Assembly (NCBI RefSeq): GCF_964204645.1
Contig: NC_134030.1
Location: 21,970,210-22,034,209 of the forward strand
Reading direction: 5' to 3'
DNA from: Tubulanus polymorphus
Taxonomy: Eukaryota; Animalia; Nemertea
DNA: 64,000 bases
The notes under the pieces are model-generated. The model ran no database searches. It saw nothing but the letters and a program-made list of their open reading frames with translations, and was not told the DNA's origin. The translations under genes and the position numbers were made by a program. Position 1 is the stretch's first letter; each line of letters starts with the position of its first letter. Positions 15,201-53,129 of the stretch are shown here, in pieces.

Positions 15201-18200
15201 AAGAGGTTCTGAACAATGGGAGCCAATTCCTGATCCACAACCTCGTAAAGTACCTCTCAAAATGGTTTTAAAAGGTTTTGACACGACGTACAAGTTCAAA
15301 GCTGATTTCAAACTGCACAATGGAACGTCATTTCGATGTGCTGTAAAGGAGAACCTTACGTTTCCAGAACCTCGACAATTTAATCCAATCATTGTTTATT
15401 GTAAGTAACAGTTTCTTTTTCGAATTCGAGAAATAAATAATTTTCCCTGCAACAATACAGACCCCAGTGGTAGTACAGACCTATCCACACATATAGCATG
15501 TCACAATGTAACCATGCTAAGCAGGAACATGGCAGAGTCTCGCGATGTCATCAGGTTCAAATCCCTGCCGAGGGAGGAACGTGGCAGAATCTCGCGATGT
15601 CATCAGGTTCGAATCCCTGCCGAGGGAGGAACGTGGCAGAGTCTCACGATGTCATCAGGTTCGAATCCCTGCCGAGGGAGGAACGTGGCAGAGTCTCACG
15701 ATGTCATCAGGTTCGAATCCCTGCCGAGGGAGGAACGTGGCAGAGTCTCACGATGTCATCAGGTTCGAATCCCTGCCGAGGATGATGGGTCTACTATGAC
15801 AGGGCTTAAGAACTGTGCTAGGTCAGATATTACTTTTACTAATGTTTTGTTTGTTTTTCAATCAGATTTTGCCGCACCAGTTTACAAGAAATCCAGTGAA
15901 AATGAAACAAATGCAGCGTATATTGTAACAGTTAATAGTTACCCATTGACTCAACAAGTTACATGTGACCCTCCAGCTGTCGTTCAAAAACTATCAAACT
16001 CTCAGTGGAATATAACGATACCTATCGTAAACAGTACCACAACTGACTATAGAGGGCGGTGTTTGGTTGATGGTATTAATGAAAGGGTTATTGATGTCGC
16101 TGGTTATCATCACACCGGTCCAACTGATGAACCAGGTAAGATTCCGGGTCACGACTGGATGAATTTTACATGAATTTGAAGATTCAAATGATTCAATTCC
16201 ATGACATTATAAAACTCGAGGCCATCATCTCTTAACTCGAAATCATTTCTACACAATCAAACAATTTACTTATGAAAGTCGTTATTTTCTAAATTGTCAC
16301 AAAACCTATTAATATATTTCAAAGTCTCAATTTACTAAGTCATTTGTCATTATTATTGGGTCTCATTTTACTAGGTGTAAGTCGTCATTCATTTAAAGCG
16401 TCACATACATACATATAACAAAAAAATAATTTTTGTATTTTACCTAAAGTGTAAATCATTTAGATTAGTCAGCACAGCGGAGGAGTCTCGTGACGTCATC
16501 AGATTTTAAATCCGTGCGCGATGACGTAATTCTCTGTGTCGTCAGAATTGAGCGTTTTCTATTATTATCTGTGAATTCATCACATTCAAATATTACACAA
16601 TGATTTAGCATCTTTAACTTTCTATCTTGAGGCTGTTTGACCCAATCAAGGAACAATTAATTTTCTCCCATTTTAAAAACAACTTATATACTTTATTCAG
16701 AGACTATTTGAGCTTTGAAATTAAGGAACAATTAATTTCTGTTTGACCTAGTTAATTATTCAATTAAATTGCTGTTACTTTTATCAATAGTTACAATGGA
16801 ACTATTTCTAGCTTTATATAATTCAATTCAATCGCATCACCGATTAGTTTGAATTTCCGTTTCAGATGCAGGAAATGGAGGAATAGTGGCTGGTGTTGTA
16901 ATCGGTATATTACTGATATTACTGATTCTAATAATACTGTTTATACTGTGGCGTCGTGGCTGCTGTAAGTTTTACATAAAACCATCAATAAATCTGAAAA
17001 ACAATAATAAACAAACTGCAGAAATGAAATACTCTATTAGGGGTAGAAAACCTAATGATGAACTGGTGGAAATTGTTAGTTCTATAATATTTCATATACA
17101 GAATGCTAGAAATCCAAAAGTAGTGTACACAGCTGGAAGAATTCAGGGGTCCCAAGGTGGCCAGATACAGTTCATTCTCAATTATCTGTTCAAATTTCAT
17201 TCATGCAATTGAATTCAAGAATGTTTGGAACTTAGAAGAACAGAATGTTATCATTTCTGGGATTCAGCACGGGTTGGGTCGTAGTTTCAGATGGCAGCAA
17301 ACATGAAATGTGCTACGACCAAACATTCACCGATTCCATAAAAATCATTTTGATAGAAACCGCCGGCATAGGTTTTCTTAGCCTCCAGGAGAAGCTACTA
17401 AGTAACATCGTTCTCTTCACAAATAACGGTGTTTGAAAAAGTATCCATTTTATAATGTTTAGCATCATTCAACTTTCAATCAATTTTCTAGACACAATAC
17501 GCGCATTATTCAAACCAGAATTTAGATGCACGAGACGCATTAAAAATCTAAAGCCAGAATATGCATAATGTTTATTTATTTTCGTCTGACATCGATCACT
17601 TTCAGATCTGAATCAGTGCGGTCTAAATAAAACATCGTTTTTATATCTATTGTAAAATGCAGCATTAATTGAATTATCTAATGGCGAATGAATTACTCGT
17701 AGATGCACAGTCTTCGGTACAGGCTCGATACAAGTCTCTGCGGGGTCATCAATCAACGTTGATAGGTTATGATTTCTTGCCTACGTTAGGTTCTGCATTT
17801 TCTCGTTGGGAAGTATCGTTAAGTTGTTGTGTGACGATAGTAATAAATTATCACATATGCCTACCGGGTATCGGTAATGAAAACTTGCGCCCGGTTCCTT
17901 GTCCCAGTTACCATTTATTGCCAACTAGAAGAAATTCCGTAAATCTCTGATTCCGAAAAATGACAGTACCGGTTTAAACTCGAAAAAGTTACGCAGTATC
18001 ATTGGTTCAATTGTCTCATGGCATTAGTATCCATGACTATCTTTAGTGGGTGGCTCCATGAATATCCAAATCACACTGTTTCTTTATTGGGTTGATTTGT
18101 CAGGTGAACGTGCATCGTGTAAATAAACAGTATTTCTGTTTTCTAATTCACAGTCACGTGTTTGGGTCCGAAATCTGAAGATGCGATTGAATTGTTGCGT

Positions 18201-21200
18201 TGGACAAGTGAAACCTGGTATGAAAAAGGTAAGATTCTCTCACATGATTTACTGCACATATTCTCAGATATCGGTTTGATAATTTTAGGTGTTGTTTTCT
18301 CTTTGTAGATCATGAGAATTGGGTGAAAACACGTGACCAACTGCAGCCGGGTATTTATAGAATTATTAACCCTTTATTTCTATAACATGTAGAATATCTC
18401 GCATGAATACAGTTCATAGTTTTAGAAATCATCCACTAATCATCTGAATGATATACAACTGATTTTGCTTCATTATCAAAACCGTAATTATCAATTTAAG
18501 TTTATGGTTAACAACGTAATTTTTGACTATTTTATCGTATGTTTTTGGTAGATGTTTAATGCAATTAACTGACAATTATTTCTATCTGTGAAGCACATTT
18601 ATAATAATGGCCTCTTATATTAACTCACTGGATACAATGGAAACACGTTTACGCAATGAAATAAACCAAATAATTTGGACCAAGAAACTTTTAGATTTTT
18701 CAGAAACTATTCCATATTCACGTACTAAATCCTGGACTTCACTTGTAGCAAGTGAGGATCCACCAGGTGCAAGGAGGCAATTCCTTGCTATTTTTAGGGA
18801 CTGAACTTTTCGTGAGAAATAAGAAAAAGCATGTGAAATCCCTGATAATGTGTTTGCCTAAGCGTTGTTGTCGTCGTTAACCGGCACTTTTTTCGGCAGT
18901 CCTCCAGTTCATGGTGTTTCATCGATCGTTCATTGATGTGTTTGGTTGAATGACTGGACTGGTTCCGGGTCACATGTACTCTGATCGTGCCTAGAAAACG
19001 TATCCACGCATCTAATTTTAAACAATTTTCTGCGGAAGAACGCCCACTAATTTGTGCACCCCTCCCTGAAATCCTGGATCTGCAGCTGTTCTGCGGCAAT
19101 AGAGGATTCCCATTGAAAATCAACTATACGCGAGAAACGTTTTTAGATGTCGTCTTTTTTCATGTTTATCTGTAGCTAATATTTGTGTTGTTTGTTTAAC
19201 AGTTAAAACTGAAGACTTTGAGGTCATTGAAAAGTCATTCAGTCCAGGTATATTATTCATTGTGATTTCATTTCAATAAAACAATATAAACTCACATGAT
19301 TCATCGATAAATCAACTACCTGTTTGTTAACATCGATGAATTCATTTAGAAAATTAATTTGTTGTCAATTTTTCTTTCTAGAAATTTTCAGAATAATTAA
19401 AGATGTTTACGGAACTGAGAATGATTGGGAGTTAACGAGAGATAAGGATAAACAAGGTAAGAGGAGTGAGTGGTAAGAGTAGTGAGTGGTAAGAGTAGTG
19501 AGTGGTAAGAGTAGTGAGTGGTAAGAGTAGTGACGACTCAGTTGCCGGAGGAAGAGCAGAACCGACTGATTGGTGCCCTGCATGTCTCTCTAAATATGAC
19601 ACTTCTGCCTCCTATCTTCATCCAGCAGTAATTCAAACTGTTTGATGCACAGTTTATTGGACTATTGAACAAATAATTTCTATAATTCATTTCAGCAATA
19701 GCTATCAGAGAATTCCTGTTTGGACAGTTATCAAGTGATCAAAGTAAGTAATCGTTTACCTATAGTTTGTTTTAAGTTTATGTACGCATGTGATGTATGT
19801 AAACATGCGCATGTGAGTTATGTGAACATGCACATGTGATTAATGTGTGCATTGACATTTGATTGATACATAGTAAGTTGTGAGTTGGGTAAACATGTTC
19901 ATGTAAGTTAACATGCACATGTGATTAGTTTACGTGTTTTAAGTTAACACAAGTTTCATCAATGTTTATATTTTCAGGTGTGTTAGATTTGGTGAAAGAA
20001 ATCCTAAGTAAGTTTACGAAACGACTCAATATTTCCTCTTCAACTCGAATCATCGATTCAAATGTGTTTGTTATTATCTGTTGACAGGAAAATACGTGAG
20101 AATAAACAATTTAAAAACGAAACTATCAAATGAGATCGGTAAGATTTGATTGTATACAGTTATTGGTGTATGAGTTTATTGATTATTATTCTACTGTCAA
20201 CACATTTTGTAAATGTATTACAGATACATTACTGAACAAGAAGAGGTCAATAGATGGCGCTGATGTAGTTTACAATAGAGATGAAGGTACATGATTATTT
20301 AGTGTTCAAATGAAATATTCAGCTTTGCTGATAGAAATGTAGCGAATTCTATTCAACATGGCCGCATGGCAGCCACTGAGAATAATCTATAAACCTGATA
20401 GAAGCGACCAGTTGGGAATTTGTTATAATTCAGTGTGTTATTTCGTGAAATGGAAAGTTACTCTAAATTTCTTTGCCTAAATTCGTACCGTTTTGGTCAA
20501 ATTGGATGCATCAAAATTTGTGATGGAAATTTCATCTTAAAAATGTCAGACTAGAGCTTCAGAAATACTCAAGTTACAACAAAATAATCAAATTTACAAT
20601 TGTTATTTAAGAAATAAGATGTGATATAAACTAGGGGTAATGATACAGCATGAAACAGAATTTCAATTAAACTAATTTCAAATCTATTTTTTCCGTGTTT
20701 CAGATGAAGTTCATGTTAGTTTTATGACGCAATCTAATGAAGAGAAAAAACCCCTGACAGACAAAGAGAAACAGTTCATCAGAGATGGTCAGTAAAACTA
20801 TGAATTCTATCTGAGTTCCAGTTTGATGTCGGGTTCACTACACAGTTACAGAGAGTCTTAAAAAGTGTTAAAAAAACTTACTGACGAAAATTTCCAACTT
20901 TTTGAAAAAATGTCTTCCGCATTTTTCAAGATTTATACAGATGTCTGTTAGTAATGATTAGTCATGTAGTGAACAGGGTTCAGTGATTCACTGTGTCACC
21001 AATATTTAGGAGTTATCTGTATTTATGGATTTGTTCACCCAGTCCTGAGAATGGTCGGTTCGCGGAGCTCCGTATACTGCCTATACTAAAGGGGTCGCGT
21101 TAGCGATATACCACTGACAAGGTTTTCAGTGAATGGATTTGCAAAATGAAATGAGTGCCAAAAGAGCAACTGCTCTGTGTGAATCACATTCAGCTATTTT

Positions 21201-24200
21201 TTCGCAGGCTTCAAATCCCCAGTAAACGGTTATAATGAATTTCTATATTTTCAGTTGCTTCAGCAGTTGAATCTATTGATGCTTTCTTTGCTAAAATGTC
21301 CGGTAGGTTCAATAAATCATTTCAGTAAAAATACTGTGGAGTTTGTTGTGGAATCATTGAATAATTGATTGTGTTTATTTTTACTGTAGATGCTGAATTA
21401 TGTGAACGAGGAATATTCAACATTAAACGTAGGTTTTAATTCTCATTTTATCCTCAACTGTTTATAAATACATGTGCTCTATAATCTACCGTACATGTAC
21501 ATGTGAGTTCTCTATACATGTACATGTTAGTTCTCTGTACATGTACATGTACAATACTGAAGTATTCGTAAGTTCTGTGGTTAATACTTTTTCTTTATAT
21601 TTCAGCTACTGATGAAATTGCTGGTAAGTGATAATATTCACTACGATGTTTAAACTGGTGCTAAGTCTGTTAATTGAAATATAGTTGTATCTATTTATAG
21701 ATATGTTTGTAAAAGAAACACTTCAAACAGAAGTTAAACAACAGAATGGTGAGTGTTCAGTTAATCTAGGAATCTATCAGGAAGGGGCTTACAACTATAA
21801 ACTGATTACATATTAAACATATTTTGTCTAATTACAGAAAACCTCGTCACACAAATAGAAAACCAGAAAGTAACTGATGAAACAAGGACAGGTTTGTTAC
21901 ATTATAATCGAAAATTTATTCAGATTTTTTTGATCTTCTGAAAACATGTACAGTAGATACAATTTTACACCGCAATAGTAAAAACATGTAGTAGAAACTA
22001 TTATTTATGGTTGGTTTTACAGAAATGGAAGTGGCCGATCGGAAGCGTTTTGTGAACAAAGATATTTGTGGTAAGACTGAAAATGTTGTTCTTTCATTAT
22101 TTTTCACGATAATTACAAATCGTTTCGTTAATGAGAAATCCAAGGTACAATAAAGCCAGCTGGACCCGGTGATGTGGAACAATTGGTAACTTTGTCGAAA
22201 TTCATCTGCTGTGTGGGAAATTTAAGGTTTTATAAAACCCAGATGTATTTATATGAAATTCTAGTTAGAACTGATCTACCAGATCAGTTCAAACTAGAAT
22301 TTCATGAATTTCATGTGTTGTAATTTCATTAGAATAACATGAATATTGACCAGACTTGTCAATATTCATGTTATTCTATTCATGTATTCATTTGTAGAAT
22401 CAGTTTTATTGGGTTCAAGTTTGCAGAAATTAGAAGAGAACAAACATTCGACAGAACTAGATAAAAGTAAGTGTAAACTTTCTTTGTCTCTAGAACTAAA
22501 TTTACAGAGTATTTGATGACCATGAATTGAAGATGAAATTTATCGATGTCATCAGATTATCAGAGGCATCTGATTCAGAGCCGAGTTTTAAGTGGTGTTA
22601 AACTAAGAATGTTGCTAGGTGACAGTTTGTATCGATATGAATAATATTCAGACTGAGTTCATCGTAGATGATTAAAATCAGTTGTGTTTAAACGCCAAAA
22701 AGTTACCCAGTATCGTCAGTACAAAATCAATCATAGTTTGAAGAAACCGTGTTTTGATTGTCATGCATGTATCAAATGGGGTGGCTCCGAAAATATCCAA
22801 ATCATGTCATCATAAGAGGCTAGCCGAGGGTGATTTCTGTCAAAATGCTCCATTTTGGGAAATTATTTTTTCATTAGTTTATTTCATTGTTCAACTATAT
22901 TTTTAGGTATTTATGAAATAAGTCGAGATGTTTTAGGTAAGAACTAAATAATAGTAACAAACTATAAATACCGAGGTCTAGGGTCGAAAGCAGACGTTTT
23001 AAAAGAAATTATCAGCTGACAAATTTCAAATTACATTTTCTAGGAGTTTCTCGTTTCTTTCTGATTAGCCAGAAACTTGTTAGGTTGAATTTCATTCAGA
23101 AATTTGAATAGATTTGAATAGAAGTCTCGATGTCACCGGAAGCGAATGCCGTGTTGTAATCATGAATTATGTTCTTTTATTCAGAAATTAAATTGAAAAT
23201 CGCAGTTTTTAAATCTATCAGAGGTAAGAGGTTTATGTATGGATTGCATCACAATCAGCAGGGTTTATTCCATCATTTTCCAAGATTCAACCTGAGCTCA
23301 ATTTTTTCCTGGAACTCAATTTCTCATTTTTTTCATGATGATACATAGGCCTATTTACAAATATTTCTTAAAATTGCTCAATTTGTTTTCTGAGAACTCA
23401 ATTTCAGTTCTGATGAAATTTTCCTAGTAATTTATCTTGACGAATCACTTTTAGAATTGTACGCTGGACGAGCTGAAAGATTTCAGAAAGAACTCAAAGA
23501 GAAACTGAAACAAGAGGAAAATAAAGAGAGAAAAAACGAGGAGGAATTGAACAGAATAATTCACAGTTCAGTTTGTCAGGCGTTTAAATATATCACTGAT
23601 ATGAATGAAAGTAAATATCGATTTTATATCTCAAAGTATAATGCACTTAACATGTCGCATATTATATGTAAATGAATGCACATGTCACATGTTCATGTAA
23701 ATGAATGCACGTCATGTAACATGGTTCAAACATCTTTGATACATTTCAGAAACTCTGGTGGATAGTAATGTTGTACGATATGGAGGTTTGTATATAATTT
23801 ACATGGTTCAATCACAAACCAGTTTTTAGCCCACTTGGGACTTTAGTCCCAGCGGACTATTGCGTTCACTTTTCGTCCGTCGTCCGTCCGTAGACGGAAT
23901 CCAGTTATTTTGGGATGTTTTGAAGACGCTTCAAGGTAACGTCTTGATATTTGGGTTACACATGTATCTACCCTAGACACATCTTCAGCCCAAAAACTGG
24001 CCCTGTCAGATTCAAGATGGCCGGCTGGCAGCCATTGTTGTTCGCCAAAATTAGCACTTTTTACTTTTTGAGGGTAATTTTGAAGACGCTTTGATCAATT
24101 ACATTGATCTTTCGGATATATGTGAATCCCCCGAGGGCCCATCAGCAAAAATTGGGTCGATCGGACTCAAGATGGCCGTCCTATGACCTTTTTTGTGCCC

Positions 24201-28835: not shown

Positions 28836-28910
<75 letters not shown>

Positions 28911-34900: not shown

Positions 34901-37900
34901 TAATCATTGAATCAATTTAACCTTCTGGCATTATTTCCTCTGGCATTTTTACCTCTAGCATTTTTACACCCCTGACATTTTTACCTCTAGCATTTTTACT
35001 TCATTATTACAGCATTATTACCTTCAATTTTACTGCATTATTACCCCGTACATATCATTTATTTTTCATCACGGATTGATTTATTGCTGAATTTACATTT
35101 TATTTCTATTTGTGATTTCAGAGAAATTAAAGGAACGAGGAATCGTAGCTTATAGAAGTGAGTAGTTTGTTCATCAATTCCACAGTTTCGAGTTACCCTT
35201 AACCTATAAACTCCAAACACTAGACTCCTAACACTAAACTCCTAACACTAGACTCCTAACACTAAACTCCTAACACTAGACTCCTAACACTAGACTCCTA
35301 ACACTAGACTCCTAGCACTAGACTCCTGACACTAGACTCCTAACACTAGACTACTAACACTAGACTTCTAACACTAGACTCCTAACACTAGACTCCTAAC
35401 ACTAGACTCCTAACACTAGACTCCTAACACTAGACTCCTAACACTAGACTTCTAACACTAGACTCCTAACACTAGACTACTAACACTAGACTCCTAACAC
35501 AAGACTCCTAACACTAGACTCCTGACACTAGACTCCTAACACTAGACTCCTGACACTAGACTCCTAACACAAGACTCCTAACACTAGACTCCTACCACTA
35601 GACTCCTAACACCAGATTCCTGACACTAGACTCCTAACACTAGACTCCTAACACTAGACTCCTAACACTGGACTCCTAACACTAGACTCCTAACACTAGA
35701 CTCCTACCACTAGACTCCTAACACCAGACTCCTGACACTAGACTCCTAACACTAAACTCCTAAGACTAGACTCCTAACACCAGACTCCTGACACTAGACT
35801 CCTAACACTAAACTCCTAACACTAGACTCCTAACACTAGACTCCTAACACTAAACTCCTAACACTAGACTCCTACCACTAGACTCCTTACACTAGACTCC
35901 TAACACTAGACTCCTAACACTAGACTCCTAACACTGGACTCCTAACACTAGACCCCTAACACCAGACCCCTAACACTAGACCCCTAACACTAGACCCCTA
36001 ACACTAGACCCCTAACACTAGACTCCTAACACTAGACTCCTAACACTGAACTCCTAACACTAGACTCCTAACACTAGACTCCTAACACTAGACTCCTAAC
36101 ACTAGACTCCTAACACTAGACTACTAACACTAGACTCCTAACACTAGACTCCTAACACTAGACCCCTAACACTGAACTCCTAACATTAGACTCCTAACAC
36201 TAGACTCCTAACACTAGACTCCTAACACTAGACTCCTAACACTAGACTCCTAACACTAGACTCCTGACACTAGATTCCTGACACTAGACTCATAACACTA
36301 GACTCCTAACACTAGACTCCTAACACTAGACTCCTAACACTAGACTACTAACACTAGACTTCTAACACTAGACTCCTAACACTAGACTCCTAACACTAGA
36401 CTCCTAGCTCTAGACTCCTAACACTAGACTCCTAACACTAGACTCCTAACACTAGACTCCTAACACTAGACTCCTAACACTAGACTTCTAACACTAGACT
36501 CCTAACACTAGACCCCTAACACTGAACTCCTAACACTAGACTCCTAACACTAGACTCCTAACACTAGACTCCTAACACTAGACCCCTAACACTGAACTCC
36601 TAACACTAGACTCCTAGCTCTAGACTCCTAACACTAGACTCCTAACACTAGACTCCTAACACTAGACTCCTAACACTAGACTCCTAACACTAGACTTCTA
36701 ACACTAGACCCCTAACACTAGACCCCTAACACTGAACTCCTAACACTAGACTCCTAGCTCTAGACTCCTAACACTAGACTCCTAACACTAGACTCCTAAC
36801 ACTAGACTACTAACACTAGACTTCTAACACTAGACTCCTAACACTAGACCCCTAACACTGAACTCCTAACACTAGACTCCTAACACTAGACTCCTAACAC
36901 TAGACTTCTAACACTAGACTCCTAACACTAGACCCCTAACACTGAACTCCTAACACTAGACTCCTAACACTAGACTCCTAACACTAGACTCCTAACACTA
37001 GACTCCTAACACTAGACCCCTAACACTGAACTCCTAACACTAGACTCCTAGCTCTAGACTCCTAACAGTAGACTCCTAACACTAGACTCCTAACACTAGA
37101 CTCCTAACACTAGACTCCTAACACTAGACTCCTAACACTAGACTCCTAACACTAGACTTCTAACACTAGACTCCTAGCTCTAGACTCCTAGCTCTAGACT
37201 CCTAACACTAGACTCCTAACACTAGACTCCTAACACTAGACTCCTAACACTAGACTCCAAACACAAGACTCCTAACACTAGACTCCTAACACTGAACTCC
37301 TAACACTAGACTCCTAACACTAGACTCCTAGCTCTAGACTCCTAACACTAGACTTCTAACACTAGACTCCTAACACTAGACTCCTAACACTAAAATCCTA
37401 ACACTAGACTCCTAACACTAGACTCCTAACACTGAACTCCTAACACTAGACTCCTAACACTAGACTACTAACACTAGACTCCTAACACAAGACTCCTAAC
37501 ACTAGACTCCTGACACTAGACTCCTAACACTGAACTCCTAACACTAGACTCCTAACACTAGACTCCTAACACTAGACTCCTAACACAAGACTCCTAACAC
37601 AAGACTCCTAACACTAGACTCCTGACACTAGACTCCTAACACAAGACTCCTAACACTAGACTCCTACCACTAGACTTCTAACACTAGACTCCTAACACAA
37701 AACTCCTGACACTAGACTCCTAACACTAAACTCCTAACACTAGACTCCTAGCTCTAGACTCCTAACACTGAACTCCTAACGCTAGACTCCTAACACTAGA
37801 CTCCTGACACTAGACTCCTAACACAAGACTCCTAACACTAGACTCCTACCACTAGACTTCTAACACTAGACTCCTAACACAAAACTCCTGACACTAGACT

Positions 37901-40900
37901 CCTAACACTAAACTCCTAACACTAGACTCCTAGCTCTAGACTCCTGATACTAGACTCCTAACACTAGACTCCTAACACTTAACTCCTAACCCCAAGATCC
38001 TTTGCTGAGACTAAATTCAGCAATAAATAAAAATGATATTTATTTCTAAAAATCGCTTCACATCATGAAAATATCTCGAAGCTTTTAACCTGAAACATTG
38101 AAATGTTACAATATATCAAAAATATCAAATATTTTAAAAATAAGGTATAGAAATAAAGTAAAACATTGAATGACGATATAATGAAGAATGATTACAATAA
38201 CTTAGGAAATAAAAAAATTGAGAATTGAATAAAACATCAACAGAAATAAATACTCATGTAACAGAAATATGTTTAAAGTATTTTTTGAAAGATGAGAAAA
38301 GTGTTTAGTTGTCATATTATTCGATGAATAATTAAGTTATAATGAGTTTTTTTTAGATTTAGATTTAAATCAAAAGATGTTAAAATTATATAGTTAAAGT
38401 GAACTGTATGAATTAACCTGTTTATATCTACTCAATGTTTATATATGAATCATTGTTTTTTCTGTTTTTCAGTAAAATATGAAAGAGCGAGTAAGTACTG
38501 ATAACAACTTACACGTTAAAGTCTGTTTTGATATGTCCTGCTTTTAATAATACTGGTTCTTAATGGTAGCTTAACTGGTTCTTAAGTAGCTCTAAATCCA
38601 GTAAACTGCTCAAAGAGCTTTACACTGAAATGCTTCCTTAAGAAATAAACATTTTAAAAGCCGTCTGAATTTATTAATGGAAAGAACAGCCTGTGGGCTA
38701 GGCCCCCCTATCAATCTTCAATATTGTGGGTTGTTTAGAGCCTGTACAGTCAATATTCATTTTTCCGGTTTAACTCAATCCACTAAATTTGTAGATGTGA
38801 AAGAAGAACACGTTTCACTCTCCCTGCAGTAAATCTATTGTGTTTATTCTGTTTCAGTGAAACACATCAAACCAATAATTGCAAACAGGATCCCGGGATT
38901 TAAAGGTGAATACATTTTCTTGATCGGGAGACGTACAGGTGAAGGTCGACTGTTTTCTGTAGGAAGATATGTGACGCCATAGGCGAAGTATAGATATTTC
39001 ACAATATCAGTCAATGTCACGGTAGTTTCTAATCAACATGTCTAATTATAGATTCACTAGTGACTATTTTAGAAGATAAATGTAAAAAGGCTAGCAGTAC
39101 TGCGTTCTCAAAATACTGGAAGTATGATATATCTCGCGCATGTAAGTTTATCAGTTTTTTTATCTCTAATTGAATTCTATTTTCACTCCGATATGATATG
39201 TCGGGATACGCCCATAATACCTCCGCCCAATATACCTCCGTCCAAAATCCCACACCCGGAATCCCTCCACCCAGAATACCCTCATATGTGTCCAAAATAC
39301 CTCCACCCATAATTAAAAGAAATACTATAATTCTATTATTTAGATGTATAAAGTACCACCAATATTGACTATTATACATGTATAGGATCATATATAATGT
39401 ATTACGGTATATATAAGCCTATACTGAATAATAATTGAATAACAATTAATGACAATGTTCACTTCTAATTAGTAATGGCTGGGAAATTTACAAATCGACC
39501 CAATTTGAATAAACAACGAGATAGGGATTATAGAATATTAATTAGTTTATCTCGTGTCTTTAATCTGATACTAGATTTCTCTAGAAACAATTCAATATTT
39601 AGATTATAGAATATTAATTATTCCTCTAATCTAAGAAAACAATGTACTACATTTCGGTTTACACAATGAATTCAGTTTATTTCCATTTAACTGCAACAAT
39701 GATCTTCGAACAATAAACTGAAATTAACATTATACTTTGTTAACTACTTTTAAACTACAGAACTTTGGTTTATTTGAATATGGCCTGTAAATTCAAACTT
39801 GGATGGGGACAAATTCTAAAAAATTATATTACTAATAGGTTCCTAATTTTTTTCCTTCAGGCATAAACCCATTAGATCTAGGGCCTGGAGGTATTTTGGA
39901 AACATATGAGGGTATTCTGGGCGGAGGGATTCTGGTTGTGGGATATTTGGGTGGAGGTATTTTGGGCGGAGGTATTATGACCCGGATTCGATATGTCACA
40001 AGTTATAATCATAAGTATTTACAATTTCATATCGAAATGTTCAAAATATTTCACATCACTTACTTCATGAAATACTTATTAACTATCAAAATATAACAAT
40101 AACAATGTAATATGATTTTACTAAATATATTATCAATATGTGCTTTTATCGTAATCAACATGTCAGACTAGTCATTACGTATTCATAGTAATTAACTCTA
40201 GTCATTTCATCAATAATGAATTTGTGTCTCTCAAACATATCGTTAGTTTGTGATTCCTGTTGGCTACAACTTGTCTGACACCTCTCCCTCCATACACATG
40301 ATTCTGTTTAATAAAGACTATGTAAAGTTATGATAATCATTCACATTGTGGGATGCAATACAGATAGTACATATAAGGTTTAACTGCCTGTTCCTGATGG
40401 ATGGAGTTCTGTACCGCTGGTGTAAATGCTAGCCCCCCCCCGCCAGCCTGCCTGCCGATACAACAACCAGCCGGTTACACTATTGTATAAAAACTTGCCT
40501 ATTGTCTATTACATATAGTGTCTGTACTCAGTGAATTAACCAGTAAAACTTTAAAGACAAACACAGGTTATTGGAAACAAGTCAAAGAATGTTTCGGTAA
40601 ATGATAAATTCTTGTTTCTCTGAACGTTTTATTAAATGATCTGATTTTTATGTTTTGAATAATAATTGTTTGTTCTGTTTGAATAGGAGATGAAATTGAC
40701 AGTGAAACAAATACAACTGAACTGACAGAAATAGGTGAATATCAATACAATAACAACACATTATTCAAATAAACAAAATGTGTTGTTGAATTCCAGAAGA
40801 TGAAATTCATCAATGTTTTCAGATCTTTAGAGGCATCTGTTTTGATTCAGAGCCATGTTCTAAGTTTGAAAGTCACATTTTTTATCTCTGTGAATATTTA

Positions 40901-43900
40901 TTTTATTTAATCATTTTTTTTCAGTTGATGAGTGTATGGGTAAATGTACTAAAACAATAAGGGATGAATGGAATGCTGGTGAGTACCCTTCATGAGTACC
41001 CTTCACGAGAACCATATATTACTAGTAGACTTAAAATGCAAGTCGTAATTTCAGTACCTGGGTACAAACTACTGGTAGTTAAGCCAGTAGTTTGTACCCA
41101 GATATGTGATCAGTGAAGTGAGTACAGATAGATATATATATATATATAGATAATAGATAATTTCATTGTCCACAAAAAAAATTTGCATTGAAAAAATTAT
41201 TTTCAATAGTTATCAATATCACGATTCAATCGTGATATCACAATATCAATACAAGTGTTGTGATTAACAGATATATAGCAGCAGCAGCAGCAGCAGCAGC
41301 AGCCGCCGCACAAGGAAGGGCCAGTTTCACATCAATTTTACTTAATAAAAGTTGTCATAAGCAACTAATAGTTAATTTTCTTCGTGGGACTGACCCCAGT
41401 AAACATTCAATAGTATTCATACTCAATCTGATAATAGTGTATATTTAGGATACATTATCTATTGTCAACCTGACGACATAGTTTGCATAAATGGCGCAAT
41501 AGAGGTATTCCAGGTTTCAAATAGTTGTTTTAGATTTTCAAGGCTTGAGATATTAAAAAAGTTACGCGGGAGTAGGTGATCTTTTACTTCCGCATGTGCG
41601 AGGCATTCTAGCAGGGCATGGCGTTAATCGCCTAAGATTTGCATATTGCACTCATCACATAGCCTTTTTTCCCCTTAAAATTCTGCGCCTATGATTACTG
41701 CATCTAATGCGAGCTAAGTTGACACGGAAGTTAGTCGGAAGGTTAGTTAGGTAGAATCCTTGCTCAAAGTAAAGTCACAGTCGTTGCGGAATTAATACAA
41801 TTAAAACACCTTTTTGGATAAACTGTTCTTCTAATCTTCTTTTCCGACTGGTAGATAAATTCTAGGTATATTTTGATTGAGCCAGAATTCGGCCATGCCA
41901 CAGCCTTCCAATATACGTTTCATGCTAAACAACCATATGTAATCATTACTCTCTCCTGCGACTGTACTAGACAGGGTTCTCTTATTTTCGGCGATAAGAC
42001 TAGCCCAGTATTTCACCATTGTGGCTTTTACTTCGCATTCCAATCGGTTTCTACCATTCTCACCATATACCATATAATTCGTGGTAGAGCGGTTTAGTCG
42101 TAGTGTGCATTTACAAGAAGTTAGATGATTTTTTCAATACAGCTAATCCCCAAATTTCGCAAGCATATGATAAAATCGGTTTTACAAGTGCGTCAACAAG
42201 ATGGAAAGACGCGTCGTCCCCAAACCTATTTCTTGTGGATTTTTCTAAAACGTGGAATTGAGCCTTTGCACCACTGTCGGCTTACGTTTTGCGGCATTTG
42301 ACAAAAGTTCCAGTATGGTTAAATATAACGCCAAGGTCCTTAAACTGGTCGACTATTTCGATTTCACCATTTGCTAAGTGAAAATTGAGGAAATATGGAA
42401 GTCTTAGAATGCCGGTTCCAAGTCGAGGACACGGAAATTATTTAAATGTAATAAACATTCGTGTGATGTTGATATATAATCCATAACAAGCTTAACAGCT
42501 CCTTTTAAGCAGGTAAAATCACCACCAGTTGCTTTATCGTCTCCAACTCGACCATCAGCAATAGATAAGGCGTGATTCATTCTGTAACCATAATTATTGA
42601 TACCACCAGTGTCACGGTTAAACATGTCCAAAATAGTATGCGCTCTGAGACGGTCGACAGCTTCATTCAGTTTGTCAAACAGACCTTCAACATTTAATTT
42701 ATTGTCGCCATCGAGAAAAAGATATTGTAGTGTTCTTAAAAACATTAGTAACTATCTTCATCACTATGGAAAAAAAGGTATCGATCTTAATCATCAAACA
42801 AACCAGCATGGCCGTATATTCTTCAGGTTCGGGGCTGAAATAAACGCCGCAAATGATAACGTCTTGTTGCACAGTTGAATAATTTCTTAGCTAGTTTTAC
42901 CCATAGACATGGGTCTCGGTTTTCAATATGAATTTAGCATATTCGTTCTTAACAAAGATTACGGTTCCGCCAGATCTGCGCACTACGGTTGTTTTAATCA
43001 CGCGTTAAAGCCTAGTCTTTCCGCAAAATTTGACACCCAGGGTCCAGTTACAGTGATGAGTTAGAGTTAACTCTGAGTTAAGATTAGTTCATTTTCAATC
43101 AGTTAACTCTGGGTCAAATCTTAACTCAGAACTGTGGAACTGGGTCCAGTAATCCAGTGTTTTCCACCTTTGTTTCGGTTAACACATGAGTACCAAATAG
43201 AAACCCTCAACTGAGTACCCGGCCCTGGTACCTGAATTATGTAATTTCAATTCAGAGATCAAGTTTAACAAGCTGAACATTTAACCAGGTTGGATGACAA
43301 GTTTTCTGTGAACTTATATTTCATGTTTCAACATTTTAGACGATTTCAAAAACTCCAACGTGTTTATAGATGCAGGTAAATATTGTTTAGCTCTGATATT
43401 CAACCCAGTACTGCCCCCTGGTGACTGTATGAGATGTAACTATTCTGTTATTTGTATTGTAGCAGTGATTGTTGATGAGATAAAACGCGATTATTTTCAA
43501 ACTCCCGAATTTAAAAGTAAGTTTCCAATAAAATCAAAACCTGTTTTAACAACCAGAACTCAAATATTAATATCTGTATGTATTGTATTATTATTTATAG
43601 GATCAGTTGAGACTGCATTGAATGAAGCTATCGAGAATTCAGGTAATTGAATATTCATCATAAGTTCGAATTCTGTGTTTGAATTGAGCTCAGTTTGACT
43701 GAAGGTGTATTGTTTTATTGTGCCGGCTTTCATTATGTTTACAGGGAAATCGAAACATAACAAAAAACCAGACTATGAAGCTGCAGGTTTGTAAAATATT
43801 TCTACAATCAAACAATAACATTTCCTCATTTGACTGATGTAGTTAAGATGTGATCACTCCCTGATGACCACTAGGATGTGGTTTCTTGTTTTCCCCTCAG

Positions 43901-46550
43901 AATTATATCTTATCATTTCAGAGAGGTGGATAGCTGATGAAATGAAAGGTAAATTGACTGATAAAAAAATAAGTTTCATTCAGAGTTGAACAGTTTGTGA
44001 GGTTTTTCTATTTTTCATTTTACCAATTTTTAATTACAGATTTCAAAGTTCCACTACCTGATATTTTTGGTATGTAATATTGTTACCTCTCAGTGGCGGC
44101 TACGAACTGAAATATTCAACTAATCGATCAATTGAGTAAAAATTATGTTGATTTTTTTTAGAGCTCAATGACTATGCTAAATGGGCAGAGAAACACGGTA
44201 AAATGAAGATGGAAATGTATGGATAAAATTCAGTCATCAATTTTGTAAATATTTTGTGAAGTTAATTAATTTATATTTCAGTCGGTAATAATTCCACATA
44301 TTTGTTGAACAAGATACGTGCTATGAAGGATAAAGGTAATTAAAAGTGACTTAAACATAAACATCTTACTGGCCATAATACTGACCATTACTAAAAATAC
44401 ATTTGTCAATACTAAATCATACTTACTTAATATTAACTAAATTTTGACTCAATACTAACTTAATACTAACAATACTGACTCATACTAACTTAACACTAAC
44501 TAAAATGTTGACTCAATACTAACTTAATACTGACAATACTGACTCAATGCGGACTCAATAAGACTTACAACTGACTCAAAACTAACTCAATACTGACTTG
44601 ATACTGACTCAATGTTGATTCAATGTTAACCAATACCGACTCAATACTGACTCAATACCGACTCAATACTGACGAACAATACCGACTCAATACCGACCAC
44701 TCAATACCGACTCAATACTGATTCAATACTTAATACTCAACACTGATACAATACTTATAGGAACCATCTGTGATGTCTATTTGAGCTTCCTTTTAAAAAT
44801 ATGAAGTTGATTCAATATTATGAATGAATTATGAATGTATTCCTGATTGTGAATTTCATTTTATTTTCAAGCGATTTGAAAAAGAAAGGTTTCCTGGTAA
44901 ATGAAATGAGTAAGTAAATTATGAAGCCGTTACTTTCTGATTAAGACCAAGCTCGAGTGATGAAATAGTCTGAGATAAATCGTCGAAATTGAGATGAAAT
45001 TTAGTTTCATTTTCGTTTATGAGAAATCTGAAGTATGATTAAACCGGTTTAATCTGGATAACTGATGGGATGAAATTCATCTGGTTTATGAAATTCAGAT
45101 TTAAAATCGTATTGTTTGATAAAGAGCAGTAATTGAATCAAATCTTGATCTTGATCTTGATCTTGATTCAATAAGTTTGTTCTGTATTTAATGTTCTAAT
45201 CTCTACTGAACAGAATCATCAACAATGTTTGATAATATGATATGAAATCACTCACTAAGAACAAAAAGAGTGCGAAACATTCCTTCAGATAATATTCATT
45301 AACCATTTAGACTATATCCTAATAGACATCTTCAGGAATACTGTATTCCTTGAGCTAGTGTAGTTTATTCAACGTTTCGACTATATCCTAATAGACATCT
45401 TCAGGAATACTGTATTCCTTGAGCTAGTGTAGTTTATTCAACGTTTCGACTATATCCTAATAGACATCTTCAGGAATACTGTATTCCTTGAGCTAGTGTA
45501 GTTTATGCAACGTTTCGACTATATCCTAATAGTCATCTTCATGAATACTGTATTCCTTGAGCTAGTGTAGTTTATTCAACGTTGCGACTATTTCGTAATA
45601 GTCATCTTCAGCAATACCGGAGTGTACTAATAAAATCATTAGGTATTATCTATACAGCCCAGAACAAATGGACCAATTAAGTAATAAGATGTGACACAAA
45701 AAATGTCAGTGCGTTTCATAAAATGCATAACCTCTGTAAAGTCAGCTAATTATAGTTTTACTGCATGTGAATTGAAATTGGTACAATGATCAAAAATATC
45801 ATAGCTTTTGATTATTGTTTGCGATATTGATAAAATAAAAATGGATATAGGGACCGAAATTAAAGACTGTATGAGACATTTTTGTGATAACAATAATAAA
45901 AGTCTGATTAATCATTTCTAACAGATCTTCCTTCGATGTGTCTGCTATTTCTAGCACCGCAGAACTGATCTCTTTCCCGCATGGCATTCATCGATCTACC
46001 GATCTATGTTTTCGGTAGATCATTAAACGTCAGTTCATTCATTCCTTCGTCGGAGATCTCATAAATATGTATGTGGTGTAAGAAACACTTTGGACTTAAT
46101 AAAACACCCAGAAAAAATCAAAGATAATTCTAACTGAATCAGGGGTGGAATTAGTTGAGGTATTATTAACGATTGTCACTGTTAACAGTAAAGCCGTAAT
46201 TAGTTGAATTTTCAAGAGGTTGTGCATTTTATGAAACAGACTGTAGCGGGTTATATATAGTTGTATAAAAACAGTTACAAGCTGAACACATCTAAAACAG
46301 AGTAAACTCTAGGGGCTACTGATAAAGTATTGTGAATATAAGTTAAAGTTGACGGGTATCTACATTTAGGGAGTGTGCAGTTGTATTTGGTGTTTGGTTT
46401 ATATTGTACATGTATTTATTTATAGAAGTTACTCGTCCGAGTAATGAAACTGCTGCTAGTGATGGTCAAAGTGCTGCTGATGATAGTCACACAAGTGATA
46501 CCGTACCGAGTGGTGATCGTGAGTGGGGTGATATCGGTACACAAGTCTAG
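12299..46550 (+). CDS. Gene B1: multi-exon type-I membrane receptor with 4 Ig-like domains, TM helix, ~1050-aa micro-exon-encoded tail and C-terminal PDZ-binding motif (~1540 aa if all exons are used)
   Basis: Manual GT-AG model, all introns phase 1. Leader 12299-12413 (MKNLWRNPQKCLVIYVIILLNLMANNNSPQAFRVKRNT). Ig-like exons 13555-13845, 13943-14278, 15065-15400, 15866-16135. TM 16866-16964 (GIVAGVVIGILLILLILIILFILWRRGC). Tail exons: 18154-18228, 18309-18350, 19203-19247, 19382-19456, 19696-19743, 19978-20007, 20088-20138, 20224-20286, 20704-20787, 21255-21302, 21390-21428, 21606-21623, 21701-21748, 21838-21891, 22023-22070, 22398-22466, 22907-22936, 23185-23223, 23455-23610, 23750-23785, 25239-25256, 25381-25428, 25837-25914, 26047-26094, 26589-26672, 26852-26896, 26981-27031, 27349-27384, 27645-27662, 28123-28173, 28378-28467, 28549-28626, 28717-28764, 28943-28996, 31077-31112, 31342-31359, 31790-31840, 32171-32218, 32303-32431, 32654-32701, 33164-33247, 33440-33484 (weak GAG acceptor), 33652-33702, 35122-35157, 38473-38490, 38858-38905, 39052-39141, 40519-40596, 40687-40734, 40925-40978, 43340-43375, 43463-43516, 43601-43642, 43745-43786, 43922-43948, 44040-44069, 44162-44197, 44282-44335. 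Terminal exon 46426-46550 (...EWGDIGTQV*). The joined frame is open. 18704-18766 is a possible extra exon with a weak donor. Linkage of ectodomain and tail into one transcript is inferred from phase continuity. Confidence 0.75.
15525..15781 (+). repeat. 52-bp intronic minisatellite with Pol III A-box-like and B-box motifs (5 units; 4 units at 58640-58845)
   Basis: Unit GAACGTGGCAGAGTCTCACGATGTCATCAGGTTCGAATCCCTGCCGAGGGAG. Confidence 0.92.
23823..25195 (+). mobile_element. Non-autonomous Helentron-associated element (HINE/DINE-1-like) with internal ~150-bp tandem repeats
   Basis: T-run, then subTIR GCCCACTTGGGA with an adjacent inverted copy, then a (CGTC)n microsatellite. About 4-5 internal ~150-bp repeats at 24420-25120. 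3' subTIR TCCCAAGTAGGC (25161-25172), short palindrome GGTGTCC-CT-GGACCCC and TAGTT end. A related fragment lies at ~25630-25750. Confidence 0.8.
26677..26770. repeat. 22-bp minisatellite (CATCTACAGTAAACTACATTTA)n; paralogous array 33256-33365
   Basis: 4 and 5 tandem units directly after the donor of the VEYFK exon in each internal block. Confidence 0.9.
28838..28907. repeat. (AT)n microsatellite
   Basis: Perfect dinucleotide run. Confidence 0.98.
29018..30706. mobile_element. Composite non-autonomous DNA transposon with TATGG...CCATA ends and 6-bp TSD (IS3EU-like)
   Basis: TIR TATGGTGACTGATAAGGGCCATGAAAATATTTCC vs GGAAATATTTTCATGGCCCTTATCAGCCACCATA. CCCTCA is duplicated at 29012-29017 and 30707-30712. 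A second right end lies at ~30374, and 29018-29697 forms a long foldback with 30072-30374. Confidence 0.8.
29396..29653. mobile_element. Nested palindromic MITE with TACGG...CCGTA ends and 6-bp TSD CGCTAG (IS3EU-like)
   Basis: TIR TACGGAAGCCCCTAGGTGACATA / TATGTCACCTAGGGGCTTCCGTA; CGCTAG at 29390-29395 and 29654-29659; internal TCGAAATTCGAC subrepeats. Confidence 0.85.
33852..34182. mobile_element. Small foldback/MULE-like element with TTCCCATTTCGCCCC subrepeats
   Basis: Pyrimidine-rich subrepeats at 33852-33970 are inverted at 34080-34182. Confidence 0.6.
34250..35052. mobile_element. Foldback/MULE-like element with GGTAAAAATGCCAGA subrepeat TIRs
   Basis: Repeats at 34255-34340 are inverted at 34920-35050, around an AT-rich interior; a related fragment lies at ~686-715. 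Confidence 0.65.
35210..37990. repeat. 14-bp satellite (ACTCCTAACACTAG)n, ~200 units, intronic
   Basis: Direct tandem repeat with recurrent variants (ACTGAACTCC, CTAGCTCTAG, GACCCCTAAC); no spacers. Confidence 0.99.
39203..39989. mobile_element. Non-autonomous TIR element with subrepeat-rich ~100-bp TIRs and 8-bp TSD (Mutator/Phantom-like; superfamily uncertain)
   Basis: AATACCTCCGCCC... subrepeats are inverted at 39886-39989; GATATGTC at 39195-39202 and 39990-39997; absent from the paralogous intron 28468-28548. Confidence 0.8.
41430..42990 (-). mobile_element. Decayed, internally deleted non-LTR retrotransposon (APE endonuclease + RT C-terminus + Cys/His knuckle)
   Basis: Minus-strand translations: APE-like NNYG...IADGRVGDDKATGGDFTC...VMDYIS (42404-42745); RT thumb IEIVDQFKDLGVIF...LVDALVKPILSYACEIWG (~42145-42390, with a stop); MVYGENGR...MVKYW (41831-42073); GD*RHALLEC (~41600-41660). 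Boundaries are approximate. Confidence 0.88.
44380..44755. repeat. Degenerate 11-bp tandem repeat (CTCAATACTGA)n
   Basis: Visible periodicity. The paralogous B0 intron has only a seed (TTGACTCAATA, ~2780). Confidence 0.85.
45309..45616 (-). ncRNA. Tandem array (69-bp unit, ~4.5 copies) of minimal type-I hammerhead ribozyme motifs, Penelope-like-element type
   Basis: The minus strand of 45366-45409 and 45435-45478 reads TATTC-CTGAAGA-T-GTCTAT-taggat-ATAGTC-GAAA-CGT-T-GAATA. This gives stem I TATTC/GAATA, the CUGANGA and GAAA core, stem II (one U-U mismatch; perfect GACTAT/ATAGTC in the later units) and a palindromic ACGU helix III. The copies at ~45504 and ~45573 carry core mutations. Confidence 0.75.
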
Positions 46551-52700: not shown

Positions 52701-53129
52701 ATAGATTCTGTTACTGTGACTGACAAACTGCACACCAGCGATCAGAAAGTTACTACAGATCCGTACGTGAATATTGAGGCCGGGAACGGCAAAGACACAA
52801 CTCCGTACATGGATATGGCAGCCGCGAAGGGTAAAGACACAGCTTCATATATAGATATGGAAGCCGGGAAGGGCAAAGACACAACTCCTTATATGGATAT
52901 GGGACCCGGGATAGAAGAGGATACGTACAGGAGTACGGAAACCGGGAAGGACAAACACACAACTCCTTACACGAATACCGGAGCCGAGAAGGACAAAGAT
53001 AGACATAGTTACGTGAATACCGAAGCCGGAAAGGCGCGCCATTTGAAGAAAGATACTGATGAACCCGTGAAAGATGATGTTGAACTTTATTCTTACGCTA
53101 CTGTTCAATATACTCGCAATAGGCGTTAG
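49772..53129 (+). CDS. Gene A2: paralogue of A1
   Basis: Exons 49772-49871, 50410-50730, 51453-51492, 51928-51970, 52176-52199, 52260-52369 (TM with in-frame 9-nt insertion), 52619-53129. Same structure as A1, open frame. Confidence 0.8.

Follow-up and report, generated by a model that had tools for sequence, protein, structure and literature searches.

LOC141906946 of Tubulanus polymorphus, a predicted Ig-like receptor gene with a tail encoded by 57 consecutive symmetric phase-1 small exons

Gene structure at the locus

The window (the whole stretch of DNA that was analyzed, 64,000 nucleotides) comes from a chromosome of Tubulanus polymorphus, and the gene under study is RefSeq LOC141906946, listed as uncharacterised. 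Translation of the exons in the window reproduces the protein of its isoform X1 (P0053, 1483 aa) exactly, residue by residue. When P0053 was mapped onto the window, exons 2–63 were found to have AG/GT borders and to be in phase 1-1 throughout (Table 1). With regard to gene structure alone, it is highly probable that 12299–46550 is one real gene.

Table 1. Positions of the features of LOC141906946 in the window
Feature	Position	Strand	Basis or remark
Exon 1, start codon and signal peptide, ends in phase 1	12299..12413	+	exact match, residues 1–38 of P0053/P0044
Ectodomain, four exons, phase 1-1, Ig-like and membrane-proximal domains	13555..16135	+	exact match to P0053
Ectodomain exons	13555-13845, 13943-14278, 15065-15400, 15866-16135	+	P0053
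TM exon, 99 nt, phase 1-1, hydrophobic helix then WRRGC	16866..16964	+	P0053; absent from isoform X3 (P0052)
Tail N-part, exons 7–26, 20 exons, ~365 aa	18154..23785	+	P0053
N-part exons 7–16	18154-18228, 18309-18350, 19203-19247, 19382-19456, 19696-19743, 19978-20007, 20088-20138, 20224-20286, 20704-20787, 21255-21302	+	
N-part exons 17–26	21390-21428, 21606-21623, 21701-21748, 21838-21891, 22023-22070, 22398-22466, 22907-22936, 23185-23223, 23455-23610, 23750-23785	+	
Module copy 1, exons 27–41, 15 exons, ~260 aa	25239..31112	+	P0053, module HMM; internal DNA duplicate
Module copy 1 exons	25239-25256, 25381-25428, 25837-25914, 26047-26094, 26589-26672, 26852-26896, 26981-27031, 27349-27384, 27645-27662, 28123-28173, 28378-28467, 28549-28626, 28717-28764, 28943-28996, 31077-31112	+	
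Module copy 2, exons 42–56, 15 exons, ~277 aa	31342..43375	+	P0053, module HMM
Module copy 2 exons	31342-31359, 32171-32218, 32303-32431, 32654-32701, 33164-33247, 33440-33484, 33652-33702, 35122-35157, 38473-38490, 38858-38905, 39052-39141, 40519-40596, 40687-40734, 40925-40978, 43340-43375	+	
14-bp satellite, ~199 copies, within intron 49	35210..37990	.	sequence repeat
Tail C-part, exons 57–63	43463-43516, 43601-43642, 43745-43786, 43922-43948, 44040-44069, 44162-44197, 44282-44335	+	P0053, paralogs
Exon 64, 38 nt, not a multiple of 3, stop after two residues	44872..44909	+	last coding exon, RefSeq models
Family-type terminal exon, acidic, Ser-rich, G-T-Q-V end, stop 46548-46550	46426..46550	+	intact

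The TM exon is followed by 57 GT-AG exons (18154..44335) of 18–156 nt (median 48 nt), each a multiple of 3 and in phase 1-1, which sum to 2997 nt or 999 aa. Five of them have 18 nt (starting at 21606, 25239, 27645, 31342, and 38473), and 29 of the 57 are longer than 45 nt, i.e. many are above strict micro-exon size. The initial annotation had listed 58 tail exons; 57 of these agree exactly with P0053, all being multiples of 3 in phase 1-1, and its statement that almost any exon subset stays in frame holds, since all 57 are symmetric. When open AG..GT segments with good flanks were counted independently of the annotation, phase 1-1 on the + strand gave 32, and the other five phase/strand combinations gave 3–7 each. 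The order of signal peptide, Ig-like exons, and TM helix followed by WRRGC gives a predicted topology with the tail on the cytoplasmic side, as had been proposed; the hydrophobic N-terminus and the TM helix can be read directly from the sequence.

The tail is a repeat array, in which an exon set of ~50, 36–39, 18, and 48–51 nt recurs. According to a module HMM, each paralog contains between one and three copies of a 262-aa module that spans 15 exons. In a profile-profile comparison, the middle portion of this module matched the last portion of the N-part (probability 90.5%).

The 3' end of this copy departs from that of its relatives. Exon 64 was overlooked in the initial annotation because its 38 nt are not a multiple of 3; at this position the paralogs have an exon of 39 or 42 nt. 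The acceptor reads CAAG here versus CAGG or CAGA in three paralog copies (in L036/L040), so that the AG lies one base further on and the frame runs into the stop. Since the frame stops in exon 64, the RefSeq protein lacks the GTQV end that had been read from the DNA, and no free C-terminal T-x-V (class I PDZ ligand) is present in the annotated protein of this copy. The exon encoding that end is nevertheless intact together with its stop, and its sequence agrees to 95% with the last exon (4048–4170) of the paralog lying upstream; the exon is in frame with exon 63 only when exon 64 is skipped, and lies outside the RefSeq ORF. A TQV or TVV C-terminus was found in nine of ten paralogs compared. 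The proposed terminal PDZ ligand corresponds to a PDZ-type T-Q/V-V end that is typical of the family, whereas in this copy it lies behind the frameshifted exon 64. Mutually exclusive use of two variants of exons 61–63 was rejected, since the second variant is missing from this copy.

Paralog family, domains, and predicted fold

About 20 tail-bearing gene models were found, all from T. polymorphus and nearly all on contig C6: 13 are full-length paralog models with Ig, TM, and tail, two are hybrids with NACHT, and five are fragments that contain only the tail. DNA copies of the tail are present on contigs C6, C9, and C19. A search of 5.8 billion protein clusters revealed no homologs beyond T. 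polymorphus.

The family has two alternative 3' ends, the PDZ-type T-x-V and a NACHT-LRR giant exon, into which the micro-exon region runs in some paralogs. NACHT (E 1e-14 to 1e-17) and LRR occur in the models P0004, P0050, and P0051 together with Ig-like domains, the micro-exon region, or both. Parts of the tail are N-terminal to NACHT in P0050 and P0051; in P0050 these are the N-part and, in all, ~470 residues of micro-exon tail. At three loci, tail starts and NACHT open frames (920–1000 aa) share order and strand. For the NACHT hybrids, the final micro-exon and the giant exon map to C6:22.26–22.27 Mb and C9:0.31–0.32 Mb. The Pfam search showed no NACHT in P0053, and there was no NACHT match within the window coordinates. 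One RefSeq model, P0001, contains four ectodomain sets; some long RefSeq models such as this may be read-through chimeras, which also bears on the NACHT hybrids.

The Ig matches of P0053 are below the Pfam cut-offs (C2-set_2, E 0.044). The paralog P0050 gave Ig_2 at E 7.5e-6 (26.5 bits, cut-off 27) and C2-set_2 at E 4.6e-4. For the tail, the Pfam search gave no match, and PDB profile searches gave best E-values of 0.067 and 0.24. The AlphaFold and Foldseek check suggested with the initial annotation was performed. The tail was predicted to be all-helical (~71% helix) at low confidence, the mean pLDDT being 38.6 for the whole tail and 59.1 for the module. With these low-confidence models, the best Foldseek match against PDB had an E-value of 0.62, and the best VIA-align Z was 6.0, a background level for helical models; the tail may nonetheless have a known fold. 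Thus, in agreement with the initial annotation, no named family was found for the tail in Pfam, PDB profiles, Foldseek, VIA-align, or the protein clusters. The idea that one exon equals one helix was not borne out, as 18 junctions fell outside predicted helices versus 16.8 expected (p = 0.42). Atlas features pointed weakly, with values of ≤0.87, to helical bundles found in large GTPases (Sey1, GBP_C, GVIN1), which we regard as leads only.

Comparison with known systems

Schistosome micro-exon genes (MEGs) are described as coding mostly in short symmetric exons separated by far longer introns, and as generating protein variants through exon skipping and evolving rapidly (bioRxiv 10.1101/2023.06.21.545858, PMC4350168). 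LOC141906946 likewise codes mostly in consecutive symmetric small exons. However, the products of MEGs, which are specific to flatworms, are small and secreted and lack both Ig domains and a TM helix, whereas the present gene encodes a putative IgSF-type receptor of 1483 aa with a 57-exon array, on the predicted cytoplasmic side, that is predicted to be helical and contains repeated 15-exon modules; no sequence similarity to MEGs was found.

Phase 1-1 exons are the usual rule for Ig domains. As in IgSF receptor genes, the signal-peptide exon ends in phase 1, there is one phase 1-1 exon per Ig-like domain, the phase 1-1 TM exon can be skipped, which would give soluble forms, and the paralogs form fast-evolving tandem clusters. 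Known IgSF receptors have short cytoplasmic tails with few exons, whereas here the phase-1 rule is carried through 57 more exons, and the Ig domains are too divergent to reach the Pfam cut-offs. Tropoelastin, titin PEVK, and nebulin contain dozens of consecutive in-frame cassette exons that arose by exon-set duplication, and, as is proposed here, their length is set by exon or module number and by skipping. These proteins are extracellular or sarcomeric with low-complexity or well-known repeats, in contrast with a membrane-receptor tail made of a predicted helical repeat that has no assigned family.

An echinoderm receptor with Ig plus NACHT is AjNLRC4 (PMC8699970). P0004, P0050, and P0051 resemble it in their domain combination, although LOC141906946 itself has no NACHT, and the nemertean hybrids differ from AjNLRC4-type receptors in having a signal peptide and a TM helix and, in P0050, the micro-exon tail ahead of NACHT. 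In Dscam, too, an IgSF receptor gene has numerous small alternative exons, but these form mutually exclusive clusters in the ectodomain, whereas those of LOC141906946 are cassettes in the tail.

Putative role of the tail and alternative explanations

Taken together, the gene, its repeat structure, and the reading of the tail as a helical spacer or scaffold are likely to be correct. That the tail acts as a helical scaffold is by itself a more tentative proposition, and counts as a prediction because the structure models are of low confidence. The product of LOC141906946 would be a type-I membrane protein: a signal peptide is followed by four domains of Ig-like or stalk type, a single TM helix, and ~1000 charged intracellular residues, predicted to be all-helical, from the 57 consecutive symmetric phase-1 micro-exons. 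Since all exons after exon 1 are in phase 1-1, duplication, loss, skipping, and swapping among tandem paralogs can occur without breaking the frame, and this frame-safe exchange would extend to exons, modules, and whole 3' ends. The tail would serve as a long helical spacer or scaffold, tuned in length by the number of exons and modules, that sets the distance between a fast-evolving surface recognition domain and a C-terminal output, the latter being PDZ partners or an NLR-type oligomerising ATPase. The setting would probably be immune or self/non-self recognition. It is conceivable, but unlikely, that the tail is the adjustable arm of a new class of immune or allorecognition receptors, which would join an Ig sensor to PDZ scaffolds or NACHT-LRR, with module number and regulated skipping setting its length and composition. 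Such an NLR system would be anchored in the membrane and have a linker that can be altered by splicing.

Should the models be correct, the gene has one of the longest series of symmetric small exons known so far, and we know of no other such series coding for the part of a receptor on the cytoplasmic side. It would be a case of the phase-1 rule of Ig genes spreading into a tail, allowing a tandem family to swap, multiply, and skip exons, 15-exon modules, and output ends in frame. Taken with the paralogs that contain NACHT, it is indicative of a system of surface receptors, restricted to a species or lineage, in nemerteans, a phylum whose immunity is to our knowledge almost unstudied. The gene is also a hard test for gene finders and splice-aware aligners. 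It has no bearing on any long-standing open question, and is already in RefSeq.

An alternative that we consider improbable is that the tail is a combinatorial diversifier, with many exon subsets being spliced so that a single gene yields a wide variety of tails for signalling or as baits inside the cell. The symmetry of 57/57 exons would permit this and replacement changes are frequent, but phase symmetry is also explained by descent from phase-1 Ig-type exons and repeated duplication. Comparison of RefSeq isoforms, the differences between which match whole exons, showed that one or two tail micro-exons are skipped in seven tail-bearing genes. The skipped cassettes were 18, 36, and 45 nt, plus one case of 54 + 36 nt (adjacent exons), and homologous 36-nt and 45-nt exons were skipped recurrently, in more than one gene. 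However, there are only two to four isoforms per gene, each one cassette away from the full form (two adjacent exons once), and isoform 1 is in all genes the full-length form with every exon. No mutually exclusive exon choice in the tail was seen among the RefSeq isoforms. Thus, of the combinatorial tail postulated in the initial annotation, skipping is present in the RefSeq isoforms, but one or two cassettes per isoform do not amount to a combinatorial repertoire. Isoform X2 of LOC141906946 uses an alternative acceptor at 22404 for exon 22398–22466, a 6-nt shift. The TM exon is a skippable phase 1-1 cassette as well, left out in X3 of LOC141906946 and of two paralogs. This would yield unanchored forms, and a secreted protein with the same tail does not fit a purely intracellular role.

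It is also possible, though distinctly unlikely, that the tail is an appendage, under weak constraint and decaying fast, in a tandem family of recent origin, with this copy becoming a pseudogene and the micro-exon structure having no function of its own. The codon-level comparisons, which cover three in-window pairs, gave dN/dS values of 0.8–1.9; values close to 1 fit weak sequence constraint, as does the truncation of this copy, in which the acceptor shift and stop of exon 64 take away the conserved end. The tail-only fragments and the confinement of the family to T. polymorphus in the cluster search are in line with decay, too. Against it, the 999 codons are open here, and tails of about 650–1270 residues are open in 13 paralogs. 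Each tail exon was matched in at least seven of 11 paralog proteins, and all AG/GT pairs (100%) were kept in three in-window comparisons. All exon indels in these comparisons were multiples of 3 (5/5 versus 34/141 in introns) and five-fold rarer than those of introns, which bears out the paralogous support for the exons that had been claimed. Modules 1 and 2 are 85.5% identical in exons versus 73.8% in introns, and the mean column identity of the N-part is 85% among 14 paralog copies. The tail thus evolves in a frame-preserving manner with nearly free amino-acid change.

The C-part is the most variable section among the paralogs (33–74% identity per exon). Over the tail end, overall identity was 74.6% for exons versus 83.2% for introns, but a faster divergence of exons across this whole region was rejected, as the overall figure stems from a block mosaic. 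In the divergent block 43643–44871, introns have diverged as much as exons (55–83%), and the exon excess of changes is confined to 43399–43642.

The transcript support for LOC141906946 rests on the RefSeq models. Runs X1–X3 of T. polymorphus covered introns like exons and had no GT..AG joints, and thus look like DNA; the one RNA-like run, X4, gave no contig on 15800–21799, and a search for transcript-derived protein fragments of the tail matched the RefSeq models only. The NCBI pipeline is not known to make isoforms of very small differences other than from transcript alignments. It is extremely improbable that the micro-exon array is a gene separate from the Ig-TM part, or that the exons were chained by homology to paralog models, as the tail-only models (including P0061 and P0068–P0070) and the read-through-like P0001 in the cluster might suggest. 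Against this, the first tail exon starts in phase 1 and lacks an initiation codon, the TM exon has a strong donor and likewise ends in phase 1, the isoforms include such small differences, namely a 6-nt alternative acceptor (22398 or 22404) or an 18-nt exon, and the join of TM exon and tail, as first proposed from the DNA, is present in the RefSeq models of LOC141906946 and in every full-length paralog model (at least 12 paralogs).

A GC-skew anomaly at 34–38 kb of the window is due to the 14-bp satellite in intron 49.

Exon structure and isoforms of LOC141906946

A search of 1.84 billion representative sequences with the third Ig-like exon as the query retrieved long T. polymorphus proteins (RefSeq models from one contig), and one of the retrieved clusters was encoded in the window. 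Its members P0044, P0052, and P0053 are the isoforms X2, X3, and X1 of LOC141906946, a gene that is already annotated in RefSeq but uncharacterised; a literature search found no paper on it. X1 was rebuilt from the window DNA with AG/GT borders and exact translation required. The results showed that exons 2-63 are phase 1-1 without exception. The exons of the tail, the region of approximately 1000 residues after the transmembrane (TM) exon, measure 18-156 nt (median 48; eleven of 48 nt and five of 18 nt; 2997 nt in total), and the introns of the gene 77-3315 nt. The run of symmetric phase 1-1 micro-exons described in the initial annotation was thus reproduced almost exon by exon.

In an annotation-free scan, all open AG..GT segments with a length divisible by 3 were collected from 17000-46700, a simple scoring scheme without training (pyrimidine tract, YAG, GTRAGT) was applied to their flanks, and non-overlapping candidates with a score of at least 6 were kept. 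Phase 1-1 of the + strand gave 32 candidates, and the five remaining phases across both strands gave 3-7 each. When these candidates were used to train a matrix, 58 strong exons in phase 1-1 emerged versus one on the minus strand, a figure that is partly circular. The micro-exon array is real and beyond chance.

Genes of the window, exons of LOC141906946, and NACHT loci (C6, contig of the window; C9 and C19, other contigs of the same genome)
Feature	Coordinates	Strand	Basis or remark
Window gene 1: LOC141906794			end of B-type gene
Window gene 2: short Ig gene	6863-10225		Tyr-motif tail
Window gene 3: LOC141906946	12299-46550	+	complete
Exon 1	12299-12413	+	X1 reconstruction
Four ectodomain exons		+	X1 reconstruction
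TM exon	16866-16964	+	99 nt, phase 1-1; X1 reconstruction
57 tail exons	18154-18228 (first), 44282-44335 (last)	+	X1 reconstruction
Window gene 4: short Ig gene	49772-53109		second copy
Window gene 5: LOC141906853			start of gene
NACHT locus	C6:22260581-22261048	-	inside 920-1000-aa open frame
NACHT locus	C9:320392-320856	+	inside 920-1000-aa open frame
NACHT locus	C19:29805-30263	-	inside 920-1000-aa open frame

The proposal that the Ig-TM part and the tail form one gene agrees with the RefSeq models of LOC141906946 and at least 12 paralogs, in which 16964 is joined to 18154. At this junction, both the end of the TM exon and the start of the first tail exon are in phase 1, and the latter exon has no start codon. 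The one RNA-like run of the species had nothing on 15800-21799, and three other sequencing runs covered exons and introns evenly, without splice joints. The predicted join rests on the RefSeq models, the phase logic, and the kind of annotated isoforms, which include a 6-nt alternative acceptor and a skipped 18-nt exon; to our knowledge, the NCBI pipeline derives such isoforms only from transcript alignments.

The RefSeq isoform differences in ten tail-bearing genes correspond to whole exons. Among the annotated skips, a 45-nt exon is lost in three genes and a 36-nt exon in two, and an 18-nt exon and a pair of adjacent exons (54+36 nt) are lost as well. Annotated isoforms of LOC141906946 (X3) and two paralogs omit the TM exon, and these TM-less isoforms would be unanchored proteins with the same full tail. 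Exon 22 has alternative acceptors 6 nt apart (22398/22404), which distinguish X1 from X2 by two residues. The annotated isoforms support cassette use of tail exons, not a combinatorial repertoire: the suggestion that exon skipping diversifies the tail holds for such cassettes, and each isoform is one event away from the full form. The combinatorial or bait tail that had been envisaged is hypothetical. The best reading is that LOC141906946 is a lineage-restricted IgSF receptor with a predicted helical intracellular repeat region. This region would have grown through duplication of phase-1 exon sets, an organisation that permits in-frame skipping and shuffling, and it may be a spacer or scaffold linking the membrane to a PDZ-type end or an NLR engine.

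At the 3' end, RefSeq places a 38-nt exon (44872-44909) after 44335, with a stop two residues in. The acceptor at this site is CAG followed by G or A in paralog copies (exon of 39 or 42 nt) and CAAG in LOC141906946, so that the AG falls one base later and the frame is shifted. The exon 46426-46550, whose last codons encode G-T-Q-V before a stop, shares 95% identity with the upstream paralog's terminal exon, and is in frame solely when the 38-nt exon is skipped, as in none of the annotated isoforms. Of the earlier claim that the protein ends in GTQV, the intact exon stands, but the annotated ORF stops in the 38-nt exon. Since nine of the ten listed paralog proteins end in TQV or TVV and the GTQV exon lies outside the annotated isoforms here, the PDZ-type end is a family trait, probably lost in this copy.

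Nature of the tail and its gene family

The tail is rich in charged residues (34%; E 11%, K 11%) and poor in Pro and Gly, it contains 15 Trp and 12 Cys, and it is not low-complexity. According to low-confidence AlphaFold models (mean pLDDT 38.6 for the full tail and 59.1 for a single module), the tail is approximately 71% helical and includes short strands. That the tail resembles no named family was borne out: Pfam held no matching family, a PDB sequence search gave no match, fold comparison of the low-confidence tail models gave nothing above background, and T. polymorphus proteins were the only ones returned when 5.8 billion protein clusters were searched twice, once using a profile built from twelve tails. 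The cluster searches hinge on shared words and length limits, and distant relatives could escape them.

As read from an HMM of the module, the tail comprises an N-part (approximately 365 aa, 20 exons; mean column identity among paralogs 85%), a 15-exon module of 262 aa present in one to three copies, and a variable C-part. The end of the N-part resembles the middle of the module (profile comparison, probability 90.5%). An exon set of approximately 50, 36-39, 18, and 48-51 nt is repeated at five places (exons 16-19, 25-28, 33-36, 40-43, and 48-51), indicating that the five 18-nt exons are copies of one another and that the micro-exon structure is older than the duplications. Exon borders do not track the helix ends of the low-confidence model.

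The tail family contains 13 full-length Ig-TM-tail genes, two NACHT hybrids, and five tail-only fragment models, nearly all clustered on C6. In the RefSeq protein P0050, the ectodomain is followed by the full N-part and half a module, and then by NACHT and a helical domain of NLRC4 type; P0051 combines a shorter piece of the tail with NACHT and LRR; in P0004, NACHT-LRR follows Ig-TM directly. At least 23 NACHT loci were counted in the genome. Single open frames (920-1000 aa) encode the NACHT-LRR part, and at three loci the NACHT frame lies approximately 10 to 50 kb after the start of a tail encoded by the same strand. Together with the hybrids, this indicates that one gene combines micro-exons with a giant exon. 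P0001 (LOC141906641, 2186 aa) has four ectodomain exon sets, then one TM and NACHT-LRR. Some long RefSeq models of this kind may be read-through chimeras of tandem paralogs, which would stay in frame because of the uniform phase symmetry.

Divergence between copies

Three pairs were compared: LOC141906946 (B1) with its downstream (B2) and upstream (B0) paralogs, and module 1 with module 2. All AG and GT splice sites were retained in all three. Indels were five-fold rarer in exons than in introns (3.5 versus 17.8 per kb; p = 7e-6), and 5/5 exon indels versus 34/141 intron indels were multiples of 3 (p = 8e-4). The dN/dS values were 1.9, 0.95, and 0.83, and amino-acid change in the tail exons is almost free. 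Modules 1 and 2 are 85.5% identical in exons and 73.8% in introns.

At the tail end, intron identity to the upstream paralog changes sharply by block (99-100%, 55-83%, and 92-95%), a mosaic that points to gene conversion. Excess exon change is limited to 43399-43642 (versus 1226-1469), where two exons have 8/96 positions changed and the introns 1/148 (Fisher p = 0.003). All eight exon changes are replacements by the Nei-Gojobori count, and intron identity to the upstream paralog there is 99-100%. Local diversifying selection following a recent conversion could account for the excess, as could chance, given the small sample.

Repeats and layout of the window

A 16-bp tandem repeat (4.9 copies; 19456-19533) begins exactly at the exon 10 donor, so that the donor-like GGTAAGAG recurs; splicing from one of the later copies would change the frame. 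The same repeat reaches approximately 0.9 kb in paralogs (e.g. C6:22272969-22273910). Most of intron 49 (3315 nt) is occupied by a 14-bp satellite of approximately 199 copies (35210-37990), which accounts for the pronounced drop in GC skew at 34-38 kb. Intron 4 contains a tandem repeat of 52 bp whose 3' half is tRNA-like (15523-15781; also 58638-58837). The starting peptide of P0046, isoform X2 of the paralog LOC141907029, matches the open frame of this repeat, suggesting that an alternative first exon may come from the repeat.

The window (C6:21970210-22034209; assembly 268 Mb) contains a tandem unit of approximately 43 kb (1226-20165 matches 43399-63997) and an internal duplicate (25196-29010 matches 31306-40992). 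The short Ig-like receptor gene between the B-type genes has P0011 (374 aa) as its best match, with the third Ig-like domain type in common, and carries repeated YxxM-like motifs in its last exon.
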